From: Pseudomonas aeruginosa PAO1 | Lineage (GTDB): Bacteria; Pseudomonadota; Gammaproteobacteria; Pseudomonadales; Pseudomonadaceae | Strand: one strand, 5' to 3' | DNA length: 64,000 bases | Assembly: GCF_000006765.1 (NCBI RefSeq) | Contig: NC_002516.2 | Part shown: piece by piece, positions 47,686-55,087 of the stretch | Layout of the letters: each line of letters begins with the position of its first letter | How positions within the stretch are numbered: position 1 is the first letter of the stretch | Program-made: the position numbers and the translations under genes | The notes under the pieces: generated by a model | The model's input: the letters and a program-made list of their open reading frames with translations, nothing else | Database searches by the model: none | Told to the model about the DNA's origin: nothing

Positions 47686-49080
47686 ATGACCGCCACCACC
47701 CTCCGCCCCGAACTGCTGTGCCCCGCCGGCACCCTGAAAAGCATGCGCTATGCCTTCGCCTACGGCGCCGATGCCGTCTACGCCGGGCAGCCGCGCTACA
47801 GCCTGCGGGTGCGCAACAACGATTTCGACCACGCCCAACTGGCCGAAGGCATCGCCGAGGCCCACGCACTTGGCAAGCGCTTCTACGTGGTGGTCAACAT
47901 CGCCCCGCACAACGCCAAGCTGAAAACCTTCCTGCGCGACCTGGAGCCGGTGGTCGCCATGGGTCCGGATGCGCTGATCATGTCCGATCCCGGCCTGATC
48001 ATGCTGGTTCGCCAGCATTTCCCGCAGATGCCCATCCACCTGTCGGTGCAGGCCAACGCGGTGAACTGGGCCGCGGTGCAATTCTGGCGGCAGCAGGGCC
48101 TGACCCGGGTGATCCTTTCCCGCGAGCTGTCGCTGGAGGAGATCGAGGAAATCCGCCAGCAGGTGCCGGACATGGAGCTGGAAGTGTTCGTCCACGGCGC
48201 CTTGTGCATGGCCTATTCCGGGCGCTGCCTGCTGTCCGGCTACATCAACCGCCGCGACCCCAACCAGGGCACCTGCACCAATGCCTGCCGCTGGGAATAC
48301 AAGGCGGTGGAGGGCCGCGAGGACGAGCTGGGCAACGTGGTGGCGCGGGAGCCGACCCTGGGACGCGGCGCGCCGACCGAGCAGGTGTTCCTCCTCGAGG
48401 AAGGCAACCGTCCCGGCGAACCGATGGCCGCCTTCGAGGACGAACACGGCACCTACATCATGAATTCCAAGGACCTCCGCGCCGTGCAGCACGTCGAGCG
48501 GCTGGCGCGGATCGGCGTGCACTCGCTGAAGATCGAGGGCCGCACCAAATCCCACTACTACGTGGCGCGCACCGCCCAGGTCTACCGCCAGGCGATCGAC
48601 GACGCGGCGGCCGGCAAGCCGTTCGACCGCGGCCTGATGGACACCCTGGAGTCCCTCGCCCACCGCGGCTACACCGAGGGCTTCCTGCGCCGCCACGTGC
48701 ACGACGAGTACCAGAACTACCAGCACGGCCATTCGTTGTCCGAGCGCCAGCAGTTCGTCGGCGAACTCACCGGCGAACGCCGCGACGGACTGGCCGAGGT
48801 GGAGGTGAAGAACCGCTTCCAGCGCGGCGACAGCGTCGAACTGATGACTCCGCGAGGCAACCTGAGCCTGCGCGTGGAGGACCTGCGCAACGCCGCCGGC
48901 GAGGCCATCGAGGTGGCGCCGGGCAATGGCCACGTGGTCTACCTGGCGCTGCCGGAAGGCCTGGACCTGTGCTACGCGCTACTGATGCGCGATCTCCAGC
49001 CCGGCCAGGATACCCGCCAGCCGCAGGCCGAACGCAGCGGAGGGTGTGCCGGCAAGGGCGCTTGCGGCTGCGCTCACTGA
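47686..49080 (+). CDS. trhP: U32 peptidase-family tRNA hydroxylation protein (TrhP/YegQ)
   Basis: ELLCPAG, HLSVQAN, HGALCMAYSGRCLLS, CTNACRW, SLKIEGR. Confidence 0.88.
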   Translation: MTATTLRPELLCPAGTLKSMRYAFAYGADAVYAGQPRYSLRVRNNDFDHAQLAEGIAEAHALGKRFYVVVNIAPHNAKLKTFLRDLEPVVAMGPDALIMSDPGLIMLVRQHFPQMPIHLSVQANAVNWAAVQFWRQQGLTRVILSRELSLEEIEEIRQQVPDMELEVFVHGALCMAYSGRCLLSGYINRRDPNQGTCTNACRWEYKAVEGREDELGNVVAREPTLGRGAPTEQVFLLEEGNRPGEPMAAFEDEHGTYIMNSKDLRAVQHVERLARIGVHSLKIEGRTKSHYYVARTAQVYRQAIDDAAAGKPFDRGLMDTLESLAHRGYTEGFLRRHVHDEYQNYQHGHSLSERQQFVGELTGERRDGLAEVEVKNRFQRGDSVELMTPRGNLSLRVEDLRNAAGEAIEVAPGNGHVVYLALPEGLDLCYALLMRDLQPGQDTRQPQAERSGGCAGKGACGCAH

Positions 49081-49799
49081 GGGTTGAGCAGGAACACCAC
49101 GTAGCCCCTGAACCAGGGGCTCTTTTCCAGGTAGTCGGGGGCTTGCCAGTCGCCTCCCTGGACCAGGCCGATCCGGTACGGCAGCTGCAGGCGGCTGACC
49201 CGCGGGAGGTAGGCGGCGTGGTTGGGAATGCTGTGGCGCCCCTGGTAGGTCTGCACCACCACTTCATCGACCACGCCCTTGAGCCGGTTGATCGCCGCCG
49301 GCTCGGCGTTGCTGCCCCAGTCGAGCAACCCGGTGATGCTCAAGCGGTATTCGCGGGGCAGGCGCCGGCGCAGGTCGCGGAGGAAATCGACGTACTCGTC
49401 GAGGTAGCGGGTACGCGCATCGAAGTCGATCTGGATGCCGACCACCGGGTTGCCGGCACGCTTCCAGCGCTGCACCTGGTTCAGCACGGCCTGGTAGATC
49501 TGCGGCGTCCAGCGCAGGGTATGGGCGCGGTACACCACCCAGACCTCACCCCGCGCCAGGCGCGGCACCGAGATGCCCTGGGCGATCAGCCGCACGCCCT
49601 CGCCGGGGCGCCGGCGCGACTGGCTGATCTGTCCCTGCAGGATGTACAGCGTCTCGGCCCGCGCCAGCACCGGCTGCGGCGCGACGCCGCTCCACAGCCA
49701 GAAGGCGCCGTAGTCCTCGGCGCGCACCGCGGCCTCGACGGACGGCAACAGCGGCAGGCCCAGCAACAGGCCCGCCAGCCAGGCTCGCCAGCGCCTCAC
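49074..49799 (-). CDS. DUF3142-like exported protein with a GH18-like TIM barrel
   Basis: GTG start overlapping the upstream stop (GTGA); signal peptide; VVGIQIDFDA, LSITGL and VDEVVVQTY strands. Confidence 0.75.
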   Translation of the reverse strand: MRRWRAWLAGLLLGLPLLPSVEAAVRAEDYGAFWLWSGVAPQPVLARAETLYILQGQISQSRRRPGEGVRLIAQGISVPRLARGEVWVVYRAHTLRWTPQIYQAVLNQVQRWKRAGNPVVGIQIDFDARTRYLDEYVDFLRDLRRRLPREYRLSITGLLDWGSNAEPAAINRLKGVVDEVVVQTYQGRHSIPNHAAYLPRVSRLQLPYRIGLVQGGDWQAPDYLEKSPWFRGYVVFLLNPQ

Positions 49800-51997
49800 C
49801 AGTAGTACTTCAGTTCCTTGGCCCAGGAGCTGTCGGCGTAGGTCGACTTGAGCGTACGGAACCATTGCTTGCGCTCGGCCTGCGGGATGTCCTGCTGGCC
49901 GCAGGTGTTGTAGCCGGCCGGGGCGAAGCAGTTGATCGCGCGGAACAGCGCGTAGGCCTTGTCTTCGCGCGGAGCCTTGGGGTTGTCCATGACCAGGCGA
50001 TAGCCATCCAGCCGGGAGTACACCTCGCCCTTGAAGCCGCTCGGGGTGCCGCCCAGCTCGTTGGCCTCGGGCTGGCTGTCCAGCGGCATGCCGTCGAGAC
50101 CGTTGCGCAGGATGAATTCGCCCAGGCAGTTCAGGCCCTTCGGGTCCTTGTCATCGGCGGCCAGCGCCGCGGCCGACTCGGCGATGGCCGGGCAAACGTA
50201 GCCGGACTCGGCCTTGTCGCCCTTCCAGCGGAACAGCTCCAGGCTGTTACCGGCGCCGTAGACATAGCCGAGGCTGGTGCCCAGCTTGGTCTGCGAGGGG
50301 GTTTCGCCGAGCAGCGCGAAGTCCTTGCCGAAGTCGGCGAAGCGGCTGCGGCGCAGGTCCTTGTAAAGGAGAGTGAACAGCGCGGTATCGCGCTCTTCCG
50401 CCGTCGCGCCCTGCTTGGCCTGGCGGCGCAACAGCGCGGCGTCGGCGACGTTGCGCAGGAGGATGCTGCGCAGCAGCGGCTCCTGGACCGGCGAAGCTTC
50501 GGCGAAGACCTTTTCCAACTGGCCGCTGCGCTCGTAGTTGAGCGCCAGGGCCAGCTGCAACTGGCCCTTCTGGTACGGCTGCGCGGCCTGCGGCAACAGT
50601 TCCAGCCAGAGCGCCTCGGCGGCTTTCCAGTCCTTCTGCTGCTCCAGCGCCAGCCCGCGCAGGGTCTTCTGGCTGAAGCCGACGTAGTCGAGGCTGCCGA
50701 CCTTTTGCGGCAGCGCTTCGAGGGTCTTCGCCGGATCCTGGTCGACATAGAAGCGATAGGCCGCCTGCAGGTAGGCGAACAGTTCGGGATGCGCGGCGAA
50801 GCTGGCCTGTTGGGCCTGCAGCGTTTCCCAGGTGAAGCTGCGCGGGGTCGACGGATCGTGGGCGCGCATCTGCACCAGGTCGGCCACCGCCAGCAGCAGC
50901 GGAGTCTGGATGTCGCCGAGCTGGATACCGGTCAGGAGCTTGTTGTCGACCTCCTGGACCAGGTCTTCCAGGGCCATGTTGCGCTGCCCTTGCTCAGCTT
51001 CGGCGAATTGCGCGGCATAGTCCTGGGCCAGCAGCTTCTGGTCGCCGGCCAGCCAATGCACGCGCCGTTGCAAGCCCTTGGCCGAGGCGGCGTAGAGCCC
51101 CTTCGGATACGCCTGCAGGTAGGCCTCGAGGGCGCTGCGGGTCTGTTCCAGGCGAGCCTTGTCGACATTCTGCAGCTCGGGGAAGCCCATGTCGTCGAAG
51201 GCGTTCTGCTGGGCGGCGTTGAGCAGGGTGCGCGCCTGCAGGTACAGGGCGGTTTCCTTCAGCCAGGGCTGCGACACGTCCTGCAACGCCTTGAAGCCCT
51301 GTTCGGCTTCGTCGAAGCGACCGCTGTAGAAGTTGGCCGCAGCCTCCAGGTACGTGGCGAAGGCCTTGCCTGCGGCCGACTCGACGCCTTGCGCGAGCAC
51401 ACCGCCCAGTTCCTCTTGTTCCCAGCCGCAGGCACCGAGCAGGTCCAGGCGGCTGTTGGCCAGGGCCTTGGTCTCCGCCTCGCCCAGCCCGGCGTCACGC
51501 ACCTGGCGAAGAAACGCCAGCGCGCTGTCCTGGTCGTTGCTGCGGCAGCGGCTGCCCTCGCCCTCGAAGAATTCGGCGCCGGCGATCTTTTCCGGTAGCG
51601 CTTCGGCGCCCATCTGCCGGGCCAGTTCGGCGAGCGGCGAGGGCGCTGGCGCAGGCGGCGGTGTCTCGGCCTCGCTCGCCGCCGGCAGCGCGGGCGGCTG
51701 GCTGCCGTCGCCGGGCAGCAGGCGGAACAGGCCGAACGGTACCAGGCCGTAGCCTTCGAGCTTCTCTTCCTCCGACGGCGGCGCCTCCACCAGCCGCCAG
51801 TGGCCGGCGTCGGCCAGCAGCAGGCGCAGGTTGGCGCGGGTGTCGTTGCCCGGGGCGAGGAACGGCAGGGTATCGCAGACACCGCCGCCGACCAGCGACC
51901 AATCGGGATAGCAGGAGTCGTCGCTGCTGGCCTGGGCCAGCGGGGAGAGACCGGCGCCCACCAGCAGGAGGGCGGGAAGAAGCGGCTTCGAGCGCAT
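49796..51997 (-). CDS. Exported alpha-helical (TPR-like) protein, 733 aa
   Basis: Signal peptide; helical repeats (AANFYSGRFDEAEQGF, YLQAYPKGLYAASA); Cys pairs at both ends. Confidence 0.8.
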   Translation of the reverse strand: MRSKPLLPALLLVGAGLSPLAQASSDDSCYPDWSLVGGGVCDTLPFLAPGNDTRANLRLLLADAGHWRLVEAPPSEEEKLEGYGLVPFGLFRLLPGDGSQPPALPAASEAETPPPAPAPSPLAELARQMGAEALPEKIAGAEFFEGEGSRCRSNDQDSALAFLRQVRDAGLGEAETKALANSRLDLLGACGWEQEELGGVLAQGVESAAGKAFATYLEAAANFYSGRFDEAEQGFKALQDVSQPWLKETALYLQARTLLNAAQQNAFDDMGFPELQNVDKARLEQTRSALEAYLQAYPKGLYAASAKGLQRRVHWLAGDQKLLAQDYAAQFAEAEQGQRNMALEDLVQEVDNKLLTGIQLGDIQTPLLLAVADLVQMRAHDPSTPRSFTWETLQAQQASFAAHPELFAYLQAAYRFYVDQDPAKTLEALPQKVGSLDYVGFSQKTLRGLALEQQKDWKAAEALWLELLPQAAQPYQKGQLQLALALNYERSGQLEKVFAEASPVQEPLLRSILLRNVADAALLRRQAKQGATAEERDTALFTLLYKDLRRSRFADFGKDFALLGETPSQTKLGTSLGYVYGAGNSLELFRWKGDKAESGYVCPAIAESAAALAADDKDPKGLNCLGEFILRNGLDGMPLDSQPEANELGGTPSGFKGEVYSRLDGYRLVMDNPKAPREDKAYALFRAINCFAPAGYNTCGQQDIPQAERKQWFRTLKSTYADSSWAKELKYYW

Positions 51998-52055
51998 GAA
52001 TCGTCCTTAATTCGTGGGAGTCGAAAGTGCTACAGCATACTCCGCCGGATCGCGT

Positions 52056-54911
52056 TCAACGAGCCTGGCGCAAACCTTCCTCCAGGGCATGGGCCGGCAA
52101 CGGCCGGCCGATCAGGTAGCCCTGCAGCTCGTCGCAACGCTGGGCCACCAGGAAGTCCCGCTGTTCGATGGTTTCCACGCCTTCGGCGACCACCTTCAGG
52201 TCGAGGCTGTGGGCCATGGCGATGATCGCCCGGATGATCGCCGCATCCTCGCTGTTCTGGGTCAGGTCGCGGACGAACGACTGGTCGATCTTCAGGTAGT
52301 CCAGCGGCAGGCGCTTCAGGTAGCTGAGCGAGGAATAGCCGGTGCCGAAGTCGTCGACCGATAGCTTCACCCCCATCTCGCGCAACTGGCGGAAGGTCGC
52401 CAGGACACTATCGAGGGCGTCCAGCCACTGGCTTTCGGTCAACTCCAGCTCCAGTTGCGCCGCCGGCAGGCCGCTGTCGGCAAGCGCCGAGCGCACTACG
52501 TCGAGCAGGTCGCCCTGGCGCAACTGGTGGACCGAGAGGTTCACCGAGACCCGCAGGTTCAGGCCCCGCTGGCTCCACTCGGCGGCCTGCAGGCAGGCCC
52601 GGCGCAGGACGAATTCACCGATCTCGCCGATCAACCCGCACTCCTCGGCGAGGCCGATGAAGGTCGACGGCGGGATCATGCCCTCCTCCGGATGGTGCCA
52701 GCGCACCAGCGCCTCGACCGAGTCCGGGCGGGCGCTGGCCAGGCACAGCTTGGGCTGGTAATGCACGTCCAGCTGGCCCTCCTCGACCGCCTTGCGCAAC
52801 CGGGTTTCCAGGCGCAGGCGTTCGAGGGTGCTGTCCTGCAGGTTGTCGCGGAAGAACTGGAAGGTATTGCCGCCGAGTTGCTTGGCATGTTGCATCGCCA
52901 GGTTCGCCTGGCTCATCAGCACGGAGATTTCCCGTGCCTGCTCGGAAAACAGGCTGATCCCCAGCGAGGCGCCGAGGATCAACTCGTGGCCGAGCACGCT
53001 CACCGGCTGGCGCAACTGGACCAGCAGGCGTTCGGCCAGGCGCGACAGGGCCGCGGTGCCGGTGCCGCCATCGAGGAGAATGGCGAACTCGTCGCCGGCC
53101 AGACGCGCCAGGGTGTTGGCTTCCGGCGCGGTGCGCCGCAGGCGCTGGGCCATCTCCCTGAGCAACTGGTCGGCGACCTCGTGGCCGAGGCTGTCGTTGA
53201 GCAGCTTGAAGCGGTCCAGGTCGATCAGCAGCAGGGCCAGCCCGCCCTCCTCCTGGCGCGCCCGCTGGGCCGCCTCGTGCAGCCGCTCGCGGAACAACCG
53301 GCGGTTGGCCAGGCCGGTCAGTTCGTCGTAGTGCAGCAGGTGACGCAGGCGCTCCTCGACGTCGCGGCGGGCACTGAGATCGGTGAAGAAACCGACGATG
53401 TGGGTCGCCTCGCCATTGCCGTCGCGCAGCAGGTTGAGCTGCAGCCATTGGGGATAGGGATCGCCATTCTTCCGCGTATCCACCAGTTCGCCCTGCCACT
53501 GCCCGTGCTGGCGCAGCTCGGCGCGGATCTGCCGGTAGTGGCGCTGGGCCTCGGGGGTATTCACCAGCAGGCTGGCGTTGCGCCCGACCACGTCCTCGCG
53601 GCGATAGCCGGTGATGCGACTGAAGGCCTGGTTGACCGCCAGCAGGTTGTAGGCCGGATCGAGGATCACGATGCTCTCGCTGGCCGCCTCGAACACTGTC
53701 GCGGCCAGTTGCTGCTGCTCTTCCAGGCGCTTGCGCGCGCTGATGTCGCTGCGCGTGCCGAGCATCCGCGTCACCCGTCCCCGCGGGTCGCGAGCCATGG
53801 CCCGGCCACGATCCTCCAGCCAGCGCCAGCCGCCCTCCCGGTCGCGCACGCGGTACTCCACCCGGTACAGCTCGCTGCGCCCCTTGAGATGTTCGGCGAG
53901 GGCGCGACGGATGCGCGGCAGGTCGCCGGGGTGGATGCTTTCGATCAGCCTGCGATAGTCCTCGGGACCGTCCCCGGCGTCGCTGAAGACCGCCTCGAGA
54001 TAGGAATGCTGGACCCGGCCGCTCTCCAGGTCCCAGTCCCACAACCCCAGTTCGCTGGCCTCCAGGGCCATGGCCAGGCGCGCCTCGCTCTGGCTGAGCG
54101 CCTGGCTGGTCGCGCCAAGCTCCTCGGTGCGCGCCTCCACCCGGCGCTGCAAGGCGTCGCGGGCGGCGCGCAGCTCGCGTTCGACCAGGCGCCGCTGGCC
54201 GACCTCCTGGGCGAGCTTGCGATTGAGCGCTTCGGCCTCGGCGTTGACGCGTTCCAGGTGCAGGTTCAGCGCCTGGGTCTGGAAGCGTCGCAGCAGCGCG
54301 CCCTGCACCAGCCGGTGGATCTGCCCGGCGACCACCAGCAGCGCCACCAGCAGGATCAGGCCGAGCACGCCCCAGCCCTGCAACAGGCTATGCGGCTGCA
54401 ACAGCAGGAAAACGATGGATGGCAGCAGGCCCGGCAAGGCGAAGGTGAGGAAGGCCGGCAGGCTCACCGCATAGGCGACGCTGGCGGAGAGGATCGCCGC
54501 CGCCACCAGGCCGAACACCAGCACCTGCTGGAGGAAGGCATCGGCCGGGACCAGCATGATCACCGCGAACGCCAGGGTCAGGCCCGAGGCGCCGGCGCCG
54601 CACAGGAAGGTCCGCCGCCAGTGGCGGCTGGCCTGGCGACGGCTATCGGCCTGCTGGAAGGCGGCGACCTGCAGCAGGCGCAGGACGGCGAGCAACACCA
54701 GCCAGACCAGCCAGCCGCCGAGCAGCCAACTGCTGACCTTGCCCCACACCAGGCAGGCGCTGGTCACGCCGCCGAGCAGCATGAGCAGGGTCGGCGTGCG
54801 CGAGCCGAGATAAAGGAGCCGGGTACGCTCGATGGCGATTTCGCGGGCGTAGAGCCGCAGTACATCGGTGCTGCCGCCCGGCAGCGCCAAGGGCTCGACA
54901 TGGACGGTCAT
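52056..54911 (-). CDS. Membrane-bound PAS-PAS-GGDEF-EAL c-di-GMP enzyme
   Basis: N-terminal TM helices, two PAS/PAC domains, AGDEF, VEALVRW, DDFGTGYSSL; start MTVHVEP. Confidence 0.92.
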   Translation of the reverse strand: MTVHVEPLALPGGSTDVLRLYAREIAIERTRLLYLGSRTPTLLMLLGGVTSACLVWGKVSSWLLGGWLVWLVLLAVLRLLQVAAFQQADSRRQASRHWRRTFLCGAGASGLTLAFAVIMLVPADAFLQQVLVFGLVAAAILSASVAYAVSLPAFLTFALPGLLPSIVFLLLQPHSLLQGWGVLGLILLVALLVVAGQIHRLVQGALLRRFQTQALNLHLERVNAEAEALNRKLAQEVGQRRLVERELRAARDALQRRVEARTEELGATSQALSQSEARLAMALEASELGLWDWDLESGRVQHSYLEAVFSDAGDGPEDYRRLIESIHPGDLPRIRRALAEHLKGRSELYRVEYRVRDREGGWRWLEDRGRAMARDPRGRVTRMLGTRSDISARKRLEEQQQLAATVFEAASESIVILDPAYNLLAVNQAFSRITGYRREDVVGRNASLLVNTPEAQRHYRQIRAELRQHGQWQGELVDTRKNGDPYPQWLQLNLLRDGNGEATHIVGFFTDLSARRDVEERLRHLLHYDELTGLANRRLFRERLHEAAQRARQEEGGLALLLIDLDRFKLLNDSLGHEVADQLLREMAQRLRRTAPEANTLARLAGDEFAILLDGGTGTAALSRLAERLLVQLRQPVSVLGHELILGASLGISLFSEQAREISVLMSQANLAMQHAKQLGGNTFQFFRDNLQDSTLERLRLETRLRKAVEEGQLDVHYQPKLCLASARPDSVEALVRWHHPEEGMIPPSTFIGLAEECGLIGEIGEFVLRRACLQAAEWSQRGLNLRVSVNLSVHQLRQGDLLDVVRSALADSGLPAAQLELELTESQWLDALDSVLATFRQLREMGVKLSVDDFGTGYSSLSYLKRLPLDYLKIDQSFVRDLTQNSEDAAIIRAIIAMAHSLDLKVVAEGVETIEQRDFLVAQRCDELQGYLIGRPLPAHALEEGLRQAR

Positions 54912-55087
54912 AGGCGCTTGTTCTTGTAGTGGTTTGCCTTGAAGTGGCCGGAGCATAACCGAGCAGGGGCAGGCTGCCCAAGGCCGGGATAGAGCATTTT
55001 TCCGCAGCCAGGCCCGACGCTGCGCCGGCCTGCGCCGAATGGCGGCCCGGTTTGCCCGGCTTTTCCCCGCCCCGGTAGAATGCCGCG

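Follow-up and report, generated by a model that had tools for sequence, protein, structure and literature searches.

A TfeC-type DUF3142 protein and a PA5441-family protein encoded as a pair in Pseudomonas aeruginosa PAO1

TfeC of Yersinia pseudotuberculosis is described, in review passages that summarize Zhu et al. 2026 (Nat Microbiol 11:240, doi 10.1038/s41564-025-02208-z), as a novel chitinase on a distinct branch within glycoside hydrolase family 18 (GH18); in these accounts it is an antifungal effector of the type VI secretion system T6SS4, which degrades the chitin of the fungal wall and kills Candida albicans (PMC13577199, PMC13162877, PMC13625719). Two structures of the protein, 8Y6T and 9VTV, were released in February and November 2025. 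Here we describe a DUF3142 protein of 241 amino acids (aa), encoded in a 64,000-nt stretch of the Pseudomonas aeruginosa PAO1 genome (NC_002516.2; the whole stretch is referred to as the window), which by sequence and model is the P. aeruginosa counterpart of TfeC and belongs to the TfeC branch of DUF3142. Its gene lies directly behind one for a PA5441-family protein and, going by the NCBIfam name of the latter, the locus is the PA5440-PA5443 region. With a probability of roughly 0.6, we take the two genes to form a unit in which a TfeC-type, Sec-exported glycosidase and its exported PA5441-family partner act as a pair.

PA5441 was one of the genes listed from a fly-virulence screen that also yielded twitching-motility genes (D'Argenio et al. 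2001, known to us second hand). The protein has been detected in PAO1 proteomics. Earlier work, in which it was described as a putative pilus biogenesis protein, modelled its C-terminal part on PilW, a tetratricopeptide repeat (TPR) protein; whereas that model concerned the C-terminal part only, the present analysis adds a full-length family match and a fixed pairing with a TfeC-type gene. A further group of described systems, PelB/PelA, PgaA/PgaB and AlgK/AlgL, is like this locus in that an exported TPR-like protein is encoded beside a periplasmic glycan-cleaving enzyme. Unlike them, the P. aeruginosa pair comes without a synthase, a porin domain or a conserved receptor for cyclic di-GMP (c-di-GMP), its enzyme is of another family, and the unit is complete with two genes.

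Family and fold of the DUF3142 protein

The 241-aa protein begins with a Sec-type signal peptide (residues 1-23, predicted cleavage between PSVEA and AVRAE), leaving a mature form of about 218 residues. Its Pfam DUF3142 match (53 bits) covers just positions 21-104 of the 202 in the profile, and the Pfam GH18 family (PF00704) aligns to residues 119-196 at a score below threshold (14.5 bits versus 29.6, E 0.028). When 1.84 billion cluster representatives were searched at E <= 0.001, 616 relatives were obtained, and 85 of these, with identities of 26-76%, were aligned to measure conservation. Ten residues are invariant throughout the alignment: W36, R91, Q123, D125, D127, Y136, T156, L158, Y185 and F236. 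As judged from these 85 relatives, the invariance of Q123, D125, D127 and Y185 is far beyond chance. Spacing is constrained too: D-x-D and T-G-L are 28 residues apart in 83 of the 85 sequences.

The putative catalytic strand, VVGIQIDFDA, falls at residues 118-128. Aligning the family profile with SleL (E 0.042) matches the motif to the D-F-E of that enzyme, so that D125 falls on the GH18 Asp and D127 takes the position of the catalytic Glu, and sets Y185 against the Tyr of the SleL (I/V)MTYD motif. Where the classical GH18 motif is D-x-x-D-x-D-x-E, the DUF3142 protein reads V-x-x-Q-x-D-x-D.

An AlphaFold2 model built on the 85-sequence alignment (mean predicted local distance difference test score, pLDDT, 93.2) has the (beta/alpha)8 architecture of a GH18-like TIM barrel. 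The top Foldseek match is TfeC (8Y6T/9VTV; E 3e-24, TM-scores 0.79/0.89); GH18 chitinases, hevamine and SleL come next, with E values of 1e-7 to 1e-4. Superposition with VIA again put TfeC first: on 8Y6T/9VTV the model scores Z 28.8 with a root-mean-square deviation of 1.8 Å over 206 residues, the next entry is SleL at Z 15.9, and dozens of GH18 enzymes follow at Z 14-15.6 over 193-208 residues. Sequence comparisons agree. The family profile finds 8Y6T in the PDB with an E value of 3e-70, SleL being the sole other sequence-profile match, and phmmer finds 8Y6T at E 5e-52; hhalign yielded no useful alignment between the family profile and P. aeruginosa ChiC. The barrel superposes on hevamine (1HVQ), ChiD (4LGX) and SleL (4S3J) over 195-206 residues (Z 14-16), with the catalytic and Tyr strands in register. 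It differs from these classical GH18 enzymes in its size (a mature protein of about 218 residues as against 270-400), in missing several helices and all accessory domains, and in having Asp for the catalytic Glu and Gln for the middle Asp.

The TfeC gene itself was located with a short degenerate pattern made from a TfeC peptide, which detected it in Yersinia pestis NCTC5923, Y. similis and Buttiauxella ferragutiae. The open reading frame (ORF) of Y. pestis (L012:5628-6395) encodes a protein identical to the 8Y6T chain from about residue 24 on, the match beginning right past the predicted signal peptide, which ends in A-M-A. In BLASTP, the P. aeruginosa protein is 44% identical to the Yersinia ORF over 217 residues (E 3e-58), an identity that extends across the whole mature protein. 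The two have the same fold and an N-terminal signal peptide, and the motifs Q-x-D-x-D (Q-I-D-F-D), T-G-L-L-D-W and Q-T-Y-Q-G-R are common to both; moreover, a PA5441-family gene overlaps the start of Yersinia tfeC as it does that of the P. aeruginosa gene. The surroundings are different. Whereas the Yersinia pair adjoins genes for a PAAR-pyocin toxin and its immunity protein, the P. aeruginosa pair has no T6SS-related neighbour and lies downstream of a GGDEF-EAL gene.

An initial annotation of the window, made by eye, had described the last of three co-oriented genes as coding for a GH18-like protein with Asp in place of the catalytic Glu, and as part of an undescribed module. The strands on which this was based (VVGIQIDFDA, LSITGL and VDEVVVQTY) are all present, the segment singled out for the Asp encodes exactly G121-D127, and both the GH18-like barrel and the Asp in the place of the GH18 Glu are as had been proposed. 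The word "undescribed" does not apply: the enzyme is 44% identical to a protein of solved structure that is reported to be a chitinase and T6SS4 effector. The enzyme family has been known since 2025-2026, and the P. aeruginosa gene newly joins it. Since TfeC, reported to be active, has the same Asp, the Asp-for-Glu exchange does not imply a dead enzyme or a lectin.

Pairing with the PA5441-family gene

In every genome found to carry either gene (about 39, from two classes of Pseudomonadota and including Yersinia), both are present, and the PA5441-family gene is directly upstream of the TfeC-type gene. A PA5441-family gene scores above cut-off in 31 of 151 Pseudomonadaceae genomes and is followed directly, on the same strand, by a short DUF3142 gene in 31 out of 31. 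The PA5441 family occurs in three of 401 Gammaproteobacteria genomes that were sampled evenly over the families, and the same three give a strong match of the short DUF3142 type. A phylum-wide sample contributed four further genomes, three of them in another class, all with the same arrangement. Yersinia and Buttiauxella carry the pair as well: their upstream genes match NF053584 with 783 and 709 bits, and the product of the gene upstream of Yersinia tfeC is 34% identical to the 733-aa protein of P. aeruginosa. When 14 loci were compared all against all, the PA5441-family and DUF3142 genes were the only ones in common, with no third shared gene. Pairwise identities of the two proteins are correlated (r 0.89; none of 5000 permutations as high), which points to joint inheritance, not to contact. 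Signal peptides were found on both proteins in all 14 homologous pairs inspected.

The two reading frames are interlocked in P. aeruginosa by the sequence GTGA, in which the stop codon of the large gene overlaps the start codon of the small one; as read from the sequence, this arrangement couples the translation of the two genes. In ten loci that were read, the small gene starts at points between 31 nt within the large gene and a few nucleotides past the stop of the latter. The 31-nt overlap occurs in six species (L001, L002, L003, L008, L011, L012), where the small gene begins at (A/G/T)TGGG and its first ten codons (M-G-K-T-...-L-L-V) are the other frame of the conserved W-x-K-x-L-x-Y-Y-W end of the large protein. 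In P. aeruginosa (window positions 49796-49830) this start codon reads CTG, and the GTG ten codons on, which is that of GTGA, fits as the start.

The larger protein matches the NCBIfam family NF053584 ("T4P_rel_PA5441", PA5441 family protein) with 940 bits against a cut-off of 300, over positions 3-727 of 727, and shares 99% identity with a cluster that has 1324 members, which identifies it as PA5441. It has a Sec-type signal peptide (residues 1-23, predicted cleavage between PLAQA and SSDD), eight Cys residues and an invariant C-terminal Y-Y-W. In the 14 homologues inspected, all with a signal peptide, S-S-D follows immediately after the signal peptide in ten; the mature part contains 6-9 cysteines and the C-terminal end is Y-Y-W or I-Y-W in all. 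Scanning the protein with Pfam returned no family and no TPR hit; a weak TPR_16 match is present in one homologue, and relatives are named YfiO- or YbgF-like in public records. Its AlphaFold2 model (26 sequences, pLDDT 82.7) is all-helical. With this model, Foldseek found TPR scaffolds only, at E >= 1.5e-3 and with low TM-scores, and VIA found TPR arrays (LGN, YfgM, BamD, YbgF, TadD) over residues 168-490 at Z 9-12 (maximum 12.1), a range which the tool itself gives as common by chance for helical repeats. A protein-cluster search returned the protein's own clusters and generic TPR clusters only. On the strength of the model, "TPR-like" is a fair description of the central part.

A few observations concern the distribution of the two families. 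The pair of one genome from another class (locus L030, genome G870) is 43% and 52% identical to that of P. aeruginosa, the corresponding values for Yersinia being 33% and 43%; this closeness is a hint that the two genes have moved together by horizontal transfer. A second, canonical DUF3142 type, with a full profile match (about 300 bits) and ORFs of 406-491 aa, occurs in ten of the 151 Pseudomonadaceae genomes (G113, G139, G147, G140, G031, G131, G071, G083, G058 and G060). It never adjoins a PA5441-family gene, and two of the ten genomes also carry the pair at another site. In genome G391 an 801-aa gene convergent with a weak DUF3142 relative was considered as a PA5441 relative and rejected (probability 2.8%). 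In Y. pestis NCTC5923, a 512-aa PAAR and S-type pyocin protein and a colicin-type immunity protein are encoded directly upstream of the pair (L012:453-3089), so that in Yersinia, unlike in Pseudomonas, the chitinase pair has a T6SS toxin-immunity pair for a neighbour. In Buttiauxella ferragutiae, the cellulose biosynthesis genes bcsO and bcsQ are divergent from the pair (L011:6171-7579). Positions of all features of the P. aeruginosa locus are collected in Table 1.

Table 1. Features of the P. aeruginosa locus, with positions in the window
Feature	Position	Strand	Basis
Membrane PAS-PAS-GGDEF(AGDEF)-EAL protein, PA5442-like	52056-54911	minus	Pfam EAL 253 bits, GGDEF 141 bits, PAS
Intergenic gap between GGDEF-EAL gene and PA5441-family gene, 58 bp	51998-52055	minus	AAGGA Shine-Dalgarno before ATG
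PA5441-family protein, 733 aa, exported	49796-51997	minus	NCBIfam NF053584, 940 bits
Stop/start overlap GTGA, PA5441-family gene/DUF3142 gene	49796-49799	minus	Read from sequence
TfeC-type DUF3142 protein, 241 aa from GTG, minimal GH18-like barrel	49074-49799	minus	Pfam DUF3142, AlphaFold2 model, TfeC match
G121-I-Q-I-D-F-D127, putative catalytic strand, Q-x-D-x-D for GH18 D-x-D-x-E	49419-49439	minus	Q123/D125/D127 invariant
L153-L158 (LSITGL), conserved barrel strand	49326-49343	minus	T156, L158 invariant
V177-Y185 (VDEVVVQTY), strand with invariant Tyr	49245-49271	minus	Aligns to GH18 MxYD tyrosine

How the two proteins might act

Since all family-invariant residues (Q-x-D-x-D, T-G-L, Q-x-Y) are kept in the P. 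aeruginosa DUF3142 protein, its sequence predicts that it most likely cleaves glycans containing N-acetylglucosamine; it would do so in the manner of GH18 enzymes, with Asp127 as the acid. The PA5441-family protein, exported, disulfide-rich and TPR-like in its centre, would be made in step with the enzyme by virtue of the overlapping stop and start codons, and the two would probably meet in the periplasm and act there as a pair. The large protein would be a carrier, targeting or substrate-binding subunit, a role that would make sense because the barrel of about 218 residues has no binding domain of its own; alternatively, it might keep the enzyme in check. A more general proposal, that a PA5441-family protein is the obligate exported partner of every TfeC-type chitinase, serving its folding, targeting, release or control, is one that we put forward only tentatively.

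Under that general proposal, P. aeruginosa would carry an unrecognized two-protein weapon or wall tool that cleaves glycans; fungi such as Candida could be among its targets, and the phenotype of PA5441 mutants in the old virulence screen could be accounted for. The pairing makes a single unit, built round a TfeC-type chitinase, of PA5441 and the DUF3142 gene without a number that follows it, a proposition that ordinary assays can test. As one large exported partner accompanies each TfeC-type gene in the genomes found, studies of TfeC on its own may overlook half of the system. No mention of the pairing or of the dual signal peptides was found in the literature surveyed, which did not include the primary TfeC paper; with this scope, the association of a TfeC-type enzyme with an obligate PA5441-family partner, both bearing signal peptides, is the new point of this analysis.

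Several findings weigh against a TfeC-like enzyme working with an exported partner. TfeC is reported to be a T6SS4 substrate, yet there is no T6SS gene near the P. aeruginosa pair among its neighbours in the window. T6SS cargo does not usually carry a Sec signal peptide, and the presence of one on both proteins makes one ask by what means an enzyme exported by Sec could also be delivered by a T6SS. A prediction of the complex of the two mature proteins gave ipSAE values of 0.21 and 0.00, which decide neither for nor against contact. The sole recorded phenotype of PA5441 is in fly virulence, and the NCBIfam name marks a relation to type IV pili; neither follows in an obvious way from having a chitinase as partner.

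A rival reading is a housekeeping role in the periplasm, in which the GH18-like enzyme cuts glycan strands of the cell's own peptidoglycan and the TPR-like partner positions or restrains it, for example so that type IV pili or other machinery can pass the wall. SleL is a GH18 peptidoglycan N-acetylglucosaminidase that cuts the spore cortex. It is also the best structural match of the P. aeruginosa protein past TfeC and the only other one in the PDB by sequence profile, although its margin over ordinary chitinases is less than one Z unit. Sec export of both proteins, the housekeeping nature of the window neighbours, none of them a T6SS gene, the recovery of PA5441 together with twitching-motility genes and its label as pilus-related are all in line with wall remodelling. 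Against it, the one characterized relative, TfeC, is described as acting on fungal chitin. The distribution of the pair is patchy besides (3 of 401 Gammaproteobacteria genomes, 31 of 151 in the Pseudomonadaceae), and many piliated relatives do not have it, which argues against a core function in the wall. Altogether, we regard wall remodelling as unlikely, and prefer the pairing of a TfeC-type glycosidase with an exported partner.

It is less likely still that the large exported protein is an immunity factor, a periplasmic inhibitor that protects both the producing cell and its sisters against the glycosidase: strict co-occurrence, coupled translation, signal peptides that would bring both proteins to the periplasm, the description of TfeC as a T6SS effector and the toxin and immunity genes adjoining the Yersinia pair would all suit such a role, but immunity genes are as a rule small and downstream whereas the partner has 733 residues and is encoded upstream, and it is not obvious what a chitinase would attack in the cell that makes it.

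The PAS-GGDEF-EAL gene and the surroundings of the pair

The gene upstream of the pair codes for a membrane protein in which two PAS domains are combined with a GGDEF and an EAL domain (951 aa from the ATG at 54911; an alternative in-frame ATG is found further upstream at 54956). Its GGDEF motif reads A-G-D-E-F, and its E-A-L and D-D-F-G-T-G-Y motifs are intact; by sequence, the protein may be mainly a phosphodiesterase. Its best NCBIfam matches (DibA, 595 bits) are under their cut-offs.

The initial annotation had joined this gene to the pair in an operon, in which the PAS-GGDEF-EAL protein would control, via c-di-GMP, the remodelling or sensing of an envelope glycan by a TPR scaffold and a hydrolase. 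The three genes are indeed on the same strand, separated by the 58-bp gap and then the GTGA overlap, and a site scan of the gap found neither a terminator-like hairpin nor a promoter-like site. (A TTGAAC/TATGCT promoter read by eye in the gap was rejected, its 14-nt spacer being too short.) Conservation, however, does not follow. The sensor part of the PA5442-like protein was searched for in genomes of the genus, and positions were compared with those of the PA5441-family gene in 14 of them. One clear orthologue per genome was found, at 66-69% identity. It adjoins the pair in two genomes (G001, which is the closest genome compared, sharing 83% of sampled words and with the five proteins of the locus 99.5-100% identical, and G130); it is about 2-3 kb away in two and 12-21 kb away in nine, so that 11 of the 14 have it at a distance of about 2-21 kb, and it was not found in one. 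In other Pseudomonadaceae genera, the 5-7 kb preceding the pair are free of GGDEF-EAL genes at all six loci compared, nor is this gene among those common to the 14 loci. Neither exported protein has a c-di-GMP-binding domain in Pfam and NCBIfam scans. Contigs assembled from RNA libraries were examined in four runs; they span the 58-bp gap in three of these and the GTGA junction in every one, but they show nothing about transcripts because they bridge the convergent trhP junction as well. By these comparisons the conserved unit does not include the PAS-GGDEF-EAL gene, and the three-gene operon is a very improbable arrangement, although read-through from this gene into the pair is possible. The apparent tie between the pair and c-di-GMP signalling is dissolved by this evidence.

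The analogy with the Pel, Pga and alginate systems, also drawn in the initial annotation, has no support beyond the combination of TPR protein and hydrolase. In the genomes compared, linkage to a c-di-GMP enzyme or receptor is not conserved. Other elements of that annotation hold. The middle protein is exported, with an all-helical model whose fold matches are TPR arrays; both exported proteins have the signal peptides ascribed to them; and the pair stands alone, its two genes being adjacent in every genome found with either. What had been observed is thus confirmed, and the interpretation in part: the fold calls and the two-gene unit stand, the c-di-GMP operon and the claim of an undescribed module do not.

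The region has a G+C content of 66-71%. Flanking genes are trhP (U32 family, convergent), uvrD and scpC; among these scanned window neighbours there is no synthase, porin or T6SS gene, as had been noted for the first two. The 3' ends of trhP, on the plus strand, and of the DUF3142 gene, on the minus strand, overlap by 7 bp (49074-49080), and the scan returned no terminator-like site for either gene. Two minor observations concern the GGDEF-EAL gene. In two RNA libraries, contig joints skip 171 and 2509 bases inside it (52360-52532 and 52360-54870); having flanks of just 20-22 letters, they are probably assembly artefacts. In one genome of the genus, the match to the close orthologue of the PA5442-like gene, 96-97% identical (G556:C55:85042-85880), is split into two segments meeting at residue 121/122, a pattern that suggests a frameshift.

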